In this document: positions 28,762-57,664 of the stretch, one piece after another
How positions within the stretch are numbered: position 1 is the stretch's first letter
Layout: the number at the start of each line of letters is the position of its first letter
From: Andalucia godoyi And28
Taxonomy: Eukaryota > Protista > Jakobida
NCBI GenBank assembly: GCA_009859145.1
Contig: VRVR01000018.1
Coordinates: forward strand, 67,688 to 131,687
Reading direction: 5' to 3'
DNA length: 64,000 nt
Notes under the pieces: model-generated
Databases searched by the model: none
What the model saw: only the letters and a program-made list of their open reading frames with translations
What the model was told of the DNA's origin: nothing
Translations under genes and position numbers: made by a program

Positions 28762-28867
28762 GCCTACATTATGCACTGAACATGCATATCTACGAATAGA
28801 CATGCATATTCAGTCTTGCATCCCGTTGCCGGGAAGGGGATCGGCCCCCCAACACGCCCCACGGCGT
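28762..28867 (-). ncRNA. Predicted omegaRNA scaffold, copy 1
   Basis: Same hairpin set as copy 2, abutting the element right end. Confidence 0.65.
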
Positions 28868-29378
28868 TCTTCAGATAGATGTTCCGCGCTCCGTTCCCAA
28901 TCTCGATCAATCTGCGAGCCACTTTTCTCAGCGTGGCACGTTGTTCCTGAGAAGGGTGCATTTTGATGCTGACGGCCCTAGCAGCAGGCGCTTTCGTGTC
29001 CTCAGTTGCAGCGATTGATGCAACTGGAGATACGAGGGTAGGAAAAGGCGGTAGGCGTAGTGACACGTGGTCTCTTAGGAGGTCTGCGGGACCTAGGAGG
29101 CCCTGTATCGAGCGGCGTAGGCGTAGGCGAATGCGTCATCCCAGCGCACTCACGCCCATATTTGAATTAAAAACGTGAAACCAAAAAAAAGTGAAACCAA
29201 CGAATGATAGAATAGATGGCTACGGATGCTGCGTTAAAGAGTGTCGAAAATGCGGAGCCTGTGCGTGCGGAAGCACGAATGCCTGTGAAACAAACGAGCT
29301 AGTGTCGGCCAGTATTGACCGTGTCTGGTTATGTATACTCCCTCGTATGCATGACAATGACGTGTTATTATTACTCAG
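28762..29378 (-). mobile_element. Non-autonomous TnpB/Fanzor2-derived element, copy 1 (N-terminal plus extreme C-terminal deletion type)
   Basis: Homologous to 34225-34758 and 57065-57664. Encodes ARAVSIKMHPSQEQRATLRK (IS605 OrfB HTH-like) fused to QIDRDW/NGARNIYLKN (RuvC-III). Flanked by ACCG at 29379-29382 (minus strand). Confidence 0.9.
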
Positions 29379-29470
29379 CGGTGTAAAGAGTTTCAATGAA
29401 AAGGAAAAAAGAAAGAAAGAGACGAACTTCGTTCTCTGGGATTGGATGTATTGACAAAATTACAGTACAG

Positions 29471-29576
29471 CACACACACACACACACACACACACACACA
29501 CACACACACACACACACACACACACACACACACACACACACACACACACACACACACACACACACACACACACACA
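29471..29576. repeat. (CA)n microsatellite, ~53 units
   Basis: Perfect dinucleotide run. Confidence 0.99.
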
Positions 29577-29641
29577 GAATTGCTCAAGACGTTTATTGCA
29601 GCGACACCGGAAGGAAAAACAAAAAGAGAAAAAACAACGAC

Positions 29642-55883: not shown

Positions 55884-56054
55884 TTTTTCGACTAACGCGC
55901 CGCTGTCGAAGCCTTCCACTTCCTCTTCTTCTTTTTCCACGTGCTTCGCATTGTAGATTTTTTGCGACGTATTTTTTGGAATGTTGGTTTCTTTCACCTT
56001 CTGTTTATCGTGATACGGAAGCTATATTGCTCGTTCGTTCGATGAAACGCTGCC

Positions 56055-56756
56055 TTACATGTCTCTGACCGTCACGACGATACGATCTCCATCCGCTACG
56101 GACTGGGCAGCAATTGCAGATGATCCTGCGAGTTCCGAGCTGAAGGGCTTGGTCTCAAAGGGACGTGCGCCGTCCCACTCAAACTTTTGGAACTCATACG
56201 ATCCGCGTGCCTGAAAGCCGCATCGAGACAGAGATTTCAAAGCGCGTGGGCTTGTGCACTCCGCAACTGCCATATGATATCCTTTCTCCTTGGCGAGATG
56301 CAGTGCCGCGACTACCATATCGGCAACAACGCCGTGTTTGCGATATGCAGGATGCACGCCTATCGCCAAAATATGCACCTTTCGAACACCTTCGGGGAGG
56401 TGGACATTACTTTCCGCGGCCTTTATGAGTTCGAGGACCGGTGCGTACTCGGGGAAGTCGTGCGAAGCGGCCTGAAAGCGCGTTTCTCCCGAGCCAAACG
56501 GCTTCTCATAGTCCATCACGCAAATCGCTCCCACCGTTTGTTTTGTGAAAACGTCCTTGGCAACGACGGAAAGGCCATTCGACGCGCACACCGCCATAAA
56601 TCGCCCTACGCACTCCGTCACTTGGTGGTGCGTCAAATGCAAGCGTTTGAACATTTCCTCCTCCATCAACGCCTCTGCCATCATTTCCGTTGCTCCTTGC
56701 ATGTCAGCAGGCTCCATTTTCAGGACCTGCACTGCGATTTCAAGTGTTGCATCCAT
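56055..56756 (-). CDS. GNAT acetyltransferase (insect-type arylalkylamine NAT-like), paralog A
   Basis: Motif A HILAIGVHPAYRKHGV, AECTS...GF. Aligns over its full length with 57654-58361. Confidence 0.85.
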   Translation of the reverse strand: MDATLEIAVQVLKMEPADMQGATEMMAEALMEEEMFKRLHLTHHQVTECVGRFMAVCASNGLSVVAKDVFTKQTVGAICVMDYEKPFGSGETRFQAASHDFPEYAPVLELIKAAESNVHLPEGVRKVHILAIGVHPAYRKHGVVADMVVAALHLAKEKGYHMAVAECTSPRALKSLSRCGFQARGSYEFQKFEWDGARPFETKPFSSELAGSSAIAAQSVADGDRIVVTVRDM

Positions 56757-57064
56757 TCAGAGTTTACTATTCGCAGTACACATACAGTCAAAAAAAAAAC
56801 AAAAAAAACTAGAGTTTCAATTTTATTTATACAGAAAACAAAAGTGGCGATCACGAAGAGAGTACCTGGGTCGAGAAGGAGCCCGGATTGTGCGGTCTCC
56901 CCGTTTTTCTCCCATTTTTCGCTGTGTGGCATGAGTGGGTGGTAGTGGTACTGCAACCGCATGTGTGCGTGACTGCAAGTCTCTAATTTTGGGGGTGTAC
57001 TCGAAGCATGCAGGAAGAGAGATCTGCTCACGCCAATGTCTTTCTCTTTACTCGTCCCTGCAAC

Positions 57065-57168
57065 GCCTACATAATACACTGAACATGCATATCTACGAAT
57101 AGGCATGCATATTCAATCCTGCATCCCGTTGCCGGGAAGGGGATCGGCCCCAACACGCCCCACGGCGT
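57065..57168 (-). ncRNA. Predicted omegaRNA scaffold, copy 3
   Basis: Same hairpins as copy 2, with an extra mismatch in the long stem. Confidence 0.6.
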
Positions 57169-57664
57169 TCTTCAGATAAATGCTCCGCGCTCCGTTCCCA
57201 ATCTCGATCAATCTGTGAGCCACTTTCTCAGCGTGACACGGTGTTCCTGAGAAGGATGCATTTTGATGCTGACGGCCCTAGCAGCAGGCGCTTTCGTGTC
57301 CTCAGTTGCAGCGATTGATGCAGCTGGAGATACGAGAGTAGGAAGAGGTGGTAGGTGTAGTGACACGCGGTCTCTTAGGAGGTCTGCGGGACCTAGGAGG
57401 CCCTGTATCGAGCGGCGTAGGCGTAGGCGAATGCGTCATCCCAGCGCACTCACACCCATATTTGAATTAAAAAAAGCGAAACCAACGAATGATAGAATAG
57501 ATGGCTACGGATGTTGCCTTGAAGAGTGTCGAAAATGCGGAGCCTGTGCGTGCGTAAGCACGAATTCCCAGTGAAACAAACGTGCTAGTGTCGGCCAGTA
57601 TTGACCGTGTCTGTTTATGTATACTTTCCTTCCGTATGCATGACAATGGCGTGTTATGATTCAA
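57065..57664 (-). mobile_element. Non-autonomous TnpB/Fanzor2-derived element, copy 3 (same deletion type as copy 1)
   Basis: Homologous to copy 1 (about 10 substitutions and 1 indel in ~255 nt by hand count). Encodes RAVSIKMHPSQEHRVTLRKW joined to DRD/NGARSIYLKN. ACCG at 57665-57668 (minus strand). Confidence 0.92.

Follow-up and report, generated by a model that had tools for sequence, protein, structure and literature searches.

Three decayed repeats in the genome of the jakobid Andalucia godoyi, probably derived from a single IS607-type Fanzor2 transposon

Known Fanzor2/IS607 elements and the repeat family

In the TnpB-Cas12 lineage, the eukaryotic branch consists of Fanzor2/IS607 elements, which are under development as compact genome editors. 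The closest described systems, ISvMimi/ApmFz2 of Acanthamoeba polyphaga mimivirus and ACa-1/2 of Acanthamoeba, are IS607 elements that encode Fanzor2 (PMC3627910; PMC10530073; PMC11832414). Here, we analyzed 64,000 nucleotides from Andalucia godoyi And28 (contig VRVR01000018.1, positions 67,688 to 131,687 of the forward strand), a stretch referred to as the window, in which BLASTN against the window and MAFFT alignment revealed three repeats of about 0.6 kb: copy 1 (28762-29378, - strand), copy 2 (34225-34758, + strand), and copy 3 (57065-57664, - strand). These repeats are probably decayed, internally deleted copies of one IS607-type transposon, with Fanzor2 as its only recognizable gene.

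The family resembles ISvMimi/ApmFz2 in several respects, which applies to the nuclease clade, a Glu at the alternative position (Ealt), a nuclease gene that extends to the right end (RE), a structured RE region predicted to hold the guide RNA (ωRNA), and the lack of a target-site duplication (TSD). In the closest environmental relatives, a MerR-Resolvase TnpA lies directly upstream. In contrast to ISvMimi/ApmFz2, the window copies contain neither tnpA nor an intact nuclease and comprise two kinds of internal-deletion derivative. Furthermore, their reading frame ends a few bases from the terminus instead of being followed by a non-coding tail of ~200 nt, as in ISvMimi/ApmFz2-type elements, and their junctions carry ACCG/CG, where ApmFz2 and the Clostridium IStron have GGG/GG. 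For another protist Fanzor2, NlovFz2 of Naegleria lovaniensis, the target-adjacent motif (TAM) was measured as 5'-CCG (PMC10432273), the trinucleotide that precedes the left end (LE) in all three window copies and in two environmental elements (L007 and L009). This likeness concerns the motif only; base composition and proteins of the window show no sign of close kinship to N. lovaniensis or any other named organism. TnpB-only and short IS200/IS605/IS607 derivatives of bacteria as well as TE-N2_CMe are also short, with kept ends and a transposase provided in trans (PMC3627910). Of its parent, the Fanzor1 element CMe-1A of Cyanidioschyzon, TE-N2_CMe retains just the 5' 635 bp, whereas the window copies keep both ends and the whole RE. 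A limited literature check found no description of a non-autonomous family derived from a Fanzor2/IS607 element; the window family is a further example of a known element type, from an isolated protist lineage.

Copies 1 and 3 can be aligned end to end, and their similarity to copy 2 is confined to the left ~200-225 bp and the right 161 bp. On the left, the copies begin with TTGAAT or CTGAGT; on the right, they end with ATGTAGGC. Their flanks are unrelated apart from two features: every copy has ACCG to its left, and copies 1 and 3 have ~11 nt in common to their right. With these two exceptions, the segments, coordinates, ends, and unrelated flanks given in a preliminary description of this DNA were reproduced. 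That description had also proposed a recent spread, which is overstated: every pair of copies differs by 4-7% substitutions in a star-like pattern, which points to moderately old rather than fresh copies. Identity counted over substitutions only is 93-96% for every pair (BLAST values of 83-91% are depressed by indels), equally in LE, middle, and RE, and this equal divergence argues that the present copies drift neutrally. No fourth copy was detected within the window, neither by blastn with a word size of 9 nor by a six-frame scan with the nuclease profile, and no empty-site look-alikes of the three insertion sites were found there. The exact 25-nt RE pattern gave zero matches in viral contigs and metagenome contigs.

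A nuclease gene remnant and its relatives

Read across two 1-bp frameshifts, copy 2 encodes FHFLQRLFRKATEYRERHVAIVTEEYTSK, TCGRCGEIHARRGGSSKVFACPACSSHIDRDW, and NGARSIYLKNAVGRVGGPIPFPATG, the last of which continues to CIM and a stop codon (Table 1). Only G 34757 separates the TAG stop from the core CG; the end at 34758 assumed in the preliminary description lies two bases after the stop. At the first frameshift, a relative described below (P0001) reads EEYTSKTCGRCG without a shift. Copies 1 and 3 have the extra G of the second frameshift as well (within 28891-28902 and 57192-57203, respectively); at this point, the relatives have GAYTGGAAY. Because this frameshift in RuvC-III is common to all three copies, the source lineage was already without a working nuclease, and amplification of the copies must therefore have relied on enzymes acting in trans. 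The frame-corrected peptide contains RuvC-II, a CxxC...CxxC zinc ribbon, and RuvC-III (DRD) in this order, and matches PF07282 (Cas12f1-like TNB, formerly OrfB_Zn_ribbon) with E = 2.9e-14 and 53.4 bits, the cut-off being 26.3. The preliminary description had proposed the same reading through two compensating frameshifts, which is correct, and had named failure against such profiles as grounds for abandoning it; with the PF07282 match, this refuting outcome did not occur. None of the copies has an intact frame with the full D-E-D triad, as RuvC-I is deleted in all of them and copy 2 carries the two frameshifts; by sequence, the window copies are gene remnants and not genes.

A word-indexed search with the corrected peptide yielded P0001 as the sole relative (L001 1287-1649, on a 2.7-kb contig of Logan ERR14847260), with 60% identity over zinc ribbon and RuvC-III. 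P0001 is a truncated relic of 120 aa, wedged among unrelated open reading frames (ORFs) on a eukaryote-like contig. As it is itself a relic, decayed copies of the subclade also exist in another organism. An exhaustive profile search of 1.84 billion representative proteins, using an alignment of P0001 and three exact window pieces as query, returned 6299 proteins at E ≤ 1e-3, none of them close. A close full-length relative is thus missing among these representatives, and the underlying collection of 15 billion proteins includes the predicted proteins of the host. This absence is mild evidence against an annotated intact copy in the host; genes of transposons are often omitted from gene sets. 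Together with the RuvC-III frameshift common to the copies, it also tells mildly against the intact autonomous gene elsewhere that the preliminary description had regarded as possible.

The 22 full-length top matches (alignment A4) were combined into a profile of 483 positions. They have in common the motifs KIRxYPTxEQ...W.G..R.TYN, ALDPGVRTF, EEYTSKTCGxCG, and DRDxNGARNI, and HTH_OrfB_IS605 was found in 20 of them. The corrected copy 2 peptide matches positions 404-473 of this profile with 119 bits. Compared to solved structures, the profile matches the mimivirus L79/ApmFz2 Fanzor2 (PDB 9b0l) over nearly its full length at 9e-75; for bacterial TnpBs, E-values range from 1e-24 to 1e-32. At E ≤ 10, 35 chains are listed for the profile, and none of them bears the name Fanzor1. 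The best solved relative of the copy 2 peptide itself is also 9b0l (6e-7). Fanzors are recognized by DPG in RuvC-I and a Glu six residues upstream of the zinc finger (PMC10711439). In copy 2, a Glu stands six residues before the first Cys of the zinc finger (VTE-E-Y-T-S-K-T-C), in agreement with the Ealt fingerprint. By the definition in PMC10711439, the Glu of EEYTSK stands at the alternative, Fanzor-type position and not at the canonical one. All three window copies lack the DPG region through deletion; in the 22 relatives, D-P-G is invariant. These matches support an assignment to Fanzor2 rather than Fanzor1, a grouping made by profile matches. The wider claim of the preliminary description, that the repeats are non-autonomous TnpB/Fanzor2 elements in a eukaryotic genome, is likewise supported by PF07282, the 119-bit profile match, 9b0l, and the host genes described below.

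In copies 1 and 3, an internal deletion at a 7-nt microhomology (GCTCGCA) fused the N-terminal ~20 conserved codons to RuvC-III. Copy 2 arose by a different deletion, which joined LE at a T-run (34448-34452) to the F codon of FLQRL, and retains the left end together with the last ~104 codons of the nuclease gene. Hence, two independent internal deletions, each at a short microhomology, gave rise to two kinds of derivative, and both spared the complete RE block of 161 nt. Taken together, the copies indicate a parent with the layout LE (~0.2 kb), nuclease gene, and RE and a reading frame that closed shortly before the right terminus. In copies 1 and 3, the middle reads ...AARAVSIKMHPSQEQR(A/V)TLRKW..., which corresponds to the N-terminal 'irlyPtkeQ..kW' of full-length relatives; this piece matches positions 86-118 of the relatives' profile weakly (~14 bits) and in the expected place, and the short N-terminal fragment of copy 1 alone has no Pfam match. 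Upstream, in another frame, copy 1 contains an ORF starting at 29139 (MTHSPTP...PPKRPRV) whose PPKRPRV resembles a nuclear localization signal (NLS) and whose joining to the nuclease frame would need one further frameshift. It looks like the N-terminal NLS extension reported for Fanzors (PMC10530073). Both the N-terminus in copies 1 and 3 and the IS607-type junctions of the family had been missed in the preliminary description.

Junctions, right end, and mode of mobilization

IS607 insertion is a recombination between matching dinucleotides, the nucleotide after RE is fixed, and the TAM of the partner nuclease includes the IS607 core (PMC10711439; bioRxiv 2023.11.20.567912). In the window copies, LE follows ACCG (ACCG:YTKAAT) and RE ends with TGTAGG:CG, and the same arrangement occurs independently in L007 and L009; the RE terminus is also present in L006. 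The proteins of these distant elements are ~45-55% identical to the window peptide. TGTAGG is directly followed by CG in copies 2 and 3; in copy 1, it is followed by CT, with a CG 9 nt further out. Neither terminal inverted repeats (TIRs) nor a TSD were found in any of the three copies, and the absence of both, the matching core dinucleotide, and the fixed nucleotide after RE agree with IS607 in this small sample. ACCG on the left and CG on the right fit IS607 recombination at a core dinucleotide as well as the CCG TAM of NlovFz2; by analogy, CG would be the core and CCG the TAM-like motif of the window family. The only symmetrical feature is a subterminal inverted motif of ~12 nt (TGTCATGCATAC in LE versus TGAACATGCATAT in the reverse complement of RE), and its counterpart in L007 is perfect over 17 nt. 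The right flank shared by copies 1 and 3 (TTGCAKGGA..., ~11 nt; chance ~7.5e-4 per flank pair) loses its similarity exactly at the next CG. On the simplest reading, excision in the ancestor of these two copies once took place at a CG farther out by about one helical turn, and the flank was carried along.

A serine-recombinase-like ORF was found near the nuclease gene in 40 of 88 relative loci, mostly just upstream and on the same strand. In L006, L007, and L008, the closest relatives with an available contig, a Resolvase-domain ORF lies directly upstream of the nuclease gene or overlaps it, and in L006 this ORF also has a MerR helix-turn-helix; such an arrangement is the IS607 layout. A profile built from L006-L008 revealed no serine-recombinase remnant in any frame of the three copies, and because none lies between LE and the nuclease start, the immediate parent was a nuclease-only element. 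TnpA is not encoded upstream of tnpB in the window copies, which are at most non-autonomous IS607 derivatives. In L007 (Logan SRR27710300, 361-2191), the nuclease frame is open for 174 codons 5' of the called start (ORF 395-2191, 598 aa) and overlaps the whole serine-recombinase ORF (361-1089) in a different frame, which could reflect chance or an unusually long tnpA/fanzor overlap. A giant-virus-like contig of 481 kb with dense small genes (ENA ERZ25039481 contig_36938) carries two paralogous solo Fanzor2 elements of 1.5 kb that are 88% identical (L004 1490-3001 and L005 1455-2964), with L003 as the orthologous locus; the flanks of L004 and L005 lack the ACCG/CG motif.

The RE block common to the three copies is predicted to hold the ωRNA scaffold and probably includes recombinase sites. 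The frame runs via a conserved G-P-x-P tail to the TAG one base short of the core CG, which places the 161-nt block wholly inside the 3' end of the gene. The same position, inside the gene 3' end, is seen for many TnpB ωRNAs. A published IS607 right-end element RNA (reRNA) measures ~150 nt (PMC10711439), and the size of the RE block therefore fits a guide RNA. Compared with shuffled sequence, the fold of 34560-34778 reaches a z-score of -4.7, and the last ~149 nt reach -2.8 in copy 2, -3.8 in copy 1, and -1.1 in copy 3. A GGGG(N)CCCC hairpin (GGGGGCCUAUCCCC) is also present in L007, L008, L009, and L020; its two inner GC pairs are formed in 6/6 aligned sequences and the outer two in 5/6 and 4/6. 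The terminal hairpin includes two G·U pairs, which pair in the sense-strand RNA only and are mismatches on the opposite strand, and in copy 3 its stem has a mismatch. Equivalent hairpins lie 11-13 nt from the end in L007, L004, and L005. Those of L004 and L005 are UUCG-capped, are followed by UUCUUGUAGUAUG, and show compensatory changes between the paralogues; that of L007 is long and different in sequence, in the same place. Furthermore, RNAalifold pairs the ARNI codons (CGC..ACAU) with the terminal AUGU..GCG (columns 23-32 with 227-235 of alignment A5; window 34632-34641 with 34750-34758). This pairing of the ARNI/ARSI codons with the invariant RE terminus AUGUAGGCG is predicted for the window copies, L006, L007, and L009, and is only a lead to a pseudoknot or to a helix that might close the ωRNA. 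A pseudoknot is required in IS607 TnpBs and has been suggested for Fanzor2s (PMC10711439).

The copies derive from a lineage of the type LE, Fanzor2, and RE that already carried the RuvC-III frameshift and made no active nuclease. Judging by junctions and relatives, we propose that a serine recombinase of the IS607 type (TnpA), encoded elsewhere, mobilized them in trans; it would recombine at the CG core within an ACCG target and leave neither TIR nor TSD, only a CG at either junction. In the line leading to copies 1 and 3, the CG ~11 bp further out would once have been used. In an active element, RE would provide the ωRNA scaffold, the DNA just outside RE the guide, and CCG the TAM. The window copies themselves are most likely inert relics under neutral decay.

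Several points weigh against this interpretation. The Fanzor2 call draws on ~100 residues and on the nearest relatives, with DPG and most of the protein deleted, and these relatives stem from metagenome or Logan contigs whose hosts could be a eukaryote, a giant virus, or a bacterium. The ~230 bp 5' of MHPSQEQ in copies 1 and 3 may be an NLS extension with a frameshift or untranslated sequence. With no serine recombinase gene or remnant in the copies or the window, the mobilizing enzyme is deduced only from relatives and junctions, and the CG rule comes from three copies, one of which (copy 1) has CT directly after TGTAGG. The ωRNA is a prediction: no Rfam match to the window was obtained at gathering thresholds, a tRNA scan was negative as well, the changes in the long-range RNAalifold pairing are all one-sided, and its 5' partner is under coding constraint.

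Alternatively, the copies could be satellites that provide only a guide RNA, a reading we regard as rather unlikely. They would retain the ends and an ωRNA made from the 161-nt RE, with nuclease and recombinase supplied from elsewhere, and Fanzor2 would cut empty or look-alike sites so that copies are kept or copied by repair (homing). A homing role is established for TnpB in bacteria (PMC10055086; bioRxiv 2023.11.20.567912). The survival of the whole RE block through both independent deletions would suit it, as would the copies 1/3 junction, with only ~20 nt between it and the first predicted pairing partner downstream; however, RE is no better conserved than LE or middle (93-96%) and shows no sign of selection since insertion. 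Similarly, the RE fold beats shuffled sequence in copies 1 and 2 and the G·U pairs of the terminal hairpin suit a sense-strand RNA, but copy 3 has the mismatched stem and a z-score of only -1.1. The flanks of copies 1 and 3 share only the left ACCG and about a guide length on the right, which could be the first ~10 nt of the progenitor's guide carried along, or copying into a look-alike site (CCG + TTGCAKGGA). Repair copying from as little as 4 + 11 nt of homology is not established, though, and a shared flank that stops exactly at CG is more simply explained by recombinase read-through. In the search of the 1.84 billion representative proteins, an intact close Fanzor2 that could act in trans was not found either.

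Mobility as single-stranded DNA by an HUH enzyme, either an IS200/IS605-type Y1 TnpA or a Helitron2 RepHel with a captured nuclease, is less likely still. Here, subterminal hairpins would be recognized and insertion would occur 3' of ACCG. A strong perfect hairpin does lie 13 nt from the right end, and ~23 nt from the left end there is a short imperfect stem with variable loop length, yet this LE stem is no more stable than shuffled sequence (z -0.9 to +1.25), and L007 and L009, with the same termini, have no LE hairpin distinguishable from shuffles. The idea that hairpins at both ends indicate an IS605/Helitron-like mechanism was dropped accordingly, as LE folds equal shuffled sequence. Elements of the IS200/IS605 type insert directly after a fixed tetranucleotide, but CG follows RE in independent lineages, a fixed right-flank nucleotide being a property of IS607 and not of IS605, and the Ealt/DPG clade co-occurs with IS607 TnpAs (PMC10711439). 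Fanzor genes can be carried by Helitron2 elements, in which both ends have hairpins (PMC3627910); the asymmetric terminal inverted repeats and T-rich target of Helitron2 are absent here, the nearest relatives encode serine recombinases rather than Y1 or RepHel, and the copies contain no HUH gene. A further reading, which we consider very unlikely, takes the nuclease for a Fanzor1, or for a 'Fanzor2*' that a eukaryotic cut-and-paste transposon had captured; the repeats would then be ordinary miniature inverted-repeat transposable elements of that transposon. Fanzor genes often reside inside eukaryotic DNA transposons with known short derivatives such as TE-N2_CMe of Cyanidioschyzon (PMC3627910), and some Fanzor2 genes are found in transposons with TIR and TSD (PMC10711439). 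Against this, the three copies have neither, TTGAAT... and ...TGTAGG not being inverted repeats; their termini are common to elements encoding serine recombinases; and the relatives' profile matches Fanzor2 at 9e-75 with no Fanzor1-named chain listed. Finally, we give practically no credence to an assembly artefact, which the preliminary description had named as a possible refutation, or to chance resemblance. Both frameshifts fall in short homopolymer runs, which are error-prone for some sequencing technologies, but the identical extra G recurs in three copies that differ by 4-7% substitutions, several indels, and their flanks, neighboring host ORFs of up to 2054 aa are unbroken, and the protein matches are far beyond chance; repeat alignment, BLASTN, PF07282, and the profile match already speak against both.

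Table 1. Features of the three repeats and junctions of related elements. A colon marks a junction or frameshift position.
Feature	Position	Strand	Remarks
Copy 1, right side	28750-28762	-	After RE: CT 28761-28762, then TGCATGGAG 28752-28760, then CG 28750-28751
Copy 1, body	28763-29378	-	ACCG at 29379-29382
Deletion junction, copies 1 and 3	28902-28914 (copy 1); 57203-57215 (copy 3)	-	KWLAD joined to IDRD at GCTCGCA
Copy 1, middle with nuclease gene start	28915-29139	-	ATG of MHPSQEQRATLRK at 28959-28961
ACCG left of copy 2	34221-34224	+	CG 34223-34224 = proposed core; CCG = proposed TAM-like target motif
Copy 2, body	34225-34757	+	TTGAAT...TGTAGG, then CG 34758-34759
Copy 2, LE	34225-34452	+	Non-coding; subterminal motif TGTCATGCATAC, inverted relative to RE motif
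Copy 2, nuclease remnant	34442-34756	+	RuvC-II (Ealt Glu), CxxC...CxxC zinc ribbon, RuvC-III, C-terminal tail
Copy 2, reading pieces	34442-34528, 34528-34623, 34625-34753	+	TAG stop at 34754-34756
Frameshift 1	34526-34528	+	A-run short by one A, EEYTSK:TCGRCG
RE block common to all three copies	34598-34757	+	161 nt with boundary at 34758; last ~45 codons
Frameshift 2	34622-34624	+	Extra G in DRDW:NGAR, TGGGAAC for TGGAAC
GGGG(N)CCCC hairpin	34671-34684	+	GGGGGCCUAUCCCC; also encodes the G-P-x-P tail motif
Terminal hairpin	34707-34744	+	17 bp, UUCG loop; ends 13 nt before body end
Copy 3, extension	57055-57063	-	TTGCAGGGA, shared with copy 1 flank; followed by second CG 57053-57054
Copy 3, body	57066-57664	-	ACCG 57665-57668; CG 57064-57065
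Junctions, window copies			Left ACCG:TTGAAT... (copy 1 ACCG:CTGAGT...); right ...AATGTAGG:CG (copy 1 :CT)
Junctions, L007			Left ACCG:CTTAATAAAAGCG; right CAATGTAGG:CG
Junctions, L009			Left ACCG:TTGAATCGATT; right CTGTAGG:CG
Junctions, L006			Left end not identified; right GATGTAGG:CG

Host context and meaning of the family

The window is eukaryotic, in line with the Fanzor definition. It contains genes for mTERF, a peroxisomal-type acyl-CoA oxidase, a Pex14 domain, a mitochondrial carrier, and GMPPB, and its proteins are recorded only under the source 'eukprot'. Host ORFs of 1484, 1545, and 2054 aa are uninterrupted. For the highly conserved GMPPB (61470-62516), the top homologue is 60% identical, with none higher among 5.8 billion proteins, and the host lineage appears isolated, without a close sequenced relative. 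The genes are long, largely intronless, and located on both strands, and G+C content is 49%.

Copies 1 (-) and 2 (+) flank a histidine kinase gene in inverted orientation, both with their left ends toward the gene, in a composite-like arrangement. The ORF in question (29642-34279, 1545 aa) encodes a hybrid histidine kinase with two HisKA/HATPase and two receiver domains, PAS and GAF being sub-threshold. Its first ~55 nt, including a GTG start, are copy 2 LE, and its first ~120 residues look non-coding; the true start is probably further downstream. Copy 3 lies within the last codons of a 235-aa ORF (57654-58361, -), to which LE contributes the final codons and the stop (...EPSTVES). This ORF has no Pfam match and, by eye, a GNAT-like RGLG motif; when copy 3 was excised in silico, with either boundary model, its stop shifted a few codons onward. 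Intergenic microsatellites of the (CA)n and (AAT)n/(ATT)n types are located at 29469-29580, 41025-41090, 46385-46412, 53775-53820, and 58754-58811; one of the (CA)n tracts falls between copy 1 and the histidine kinase gene. The intronless 2054-aa ORF (18055-24219, -) has a GHKL ATPase of the HATPase_c_3 type as its only domain (residues 191-302), with no Pfam match in the remainder; GHKL ATPases of this type occur in MORC-like proteins.

By themselves, the three copies are dead relics and change no current view. If the copies were guide-RNA satellites after all, they would show, for a eukaryote, that non-autonomous elements can exploit RNA-guided homing. As probable remnants of one IS607-type transposon, they offer a clear natural example of decay, in which microhomology deletions spared both ends and a block of the size of a guide RNA. 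Beyond the routine are the RE kept by two deletions, the co-mobilized flank of copies 1 and 3, and the ACCG/CG rule, which is shared with distant elements and agrees with the TAM of NlovFz2. As ACCG:...TGTAGG:CG recurs in two to three unrelated environmental elements and matches the only published CCG TAM of a protist Fanzor2, it suggests an IS607/Fanzor2 subclade with a CG core and a CCG TAM, in which active enzymes with a GC-rich TAM could be sought.

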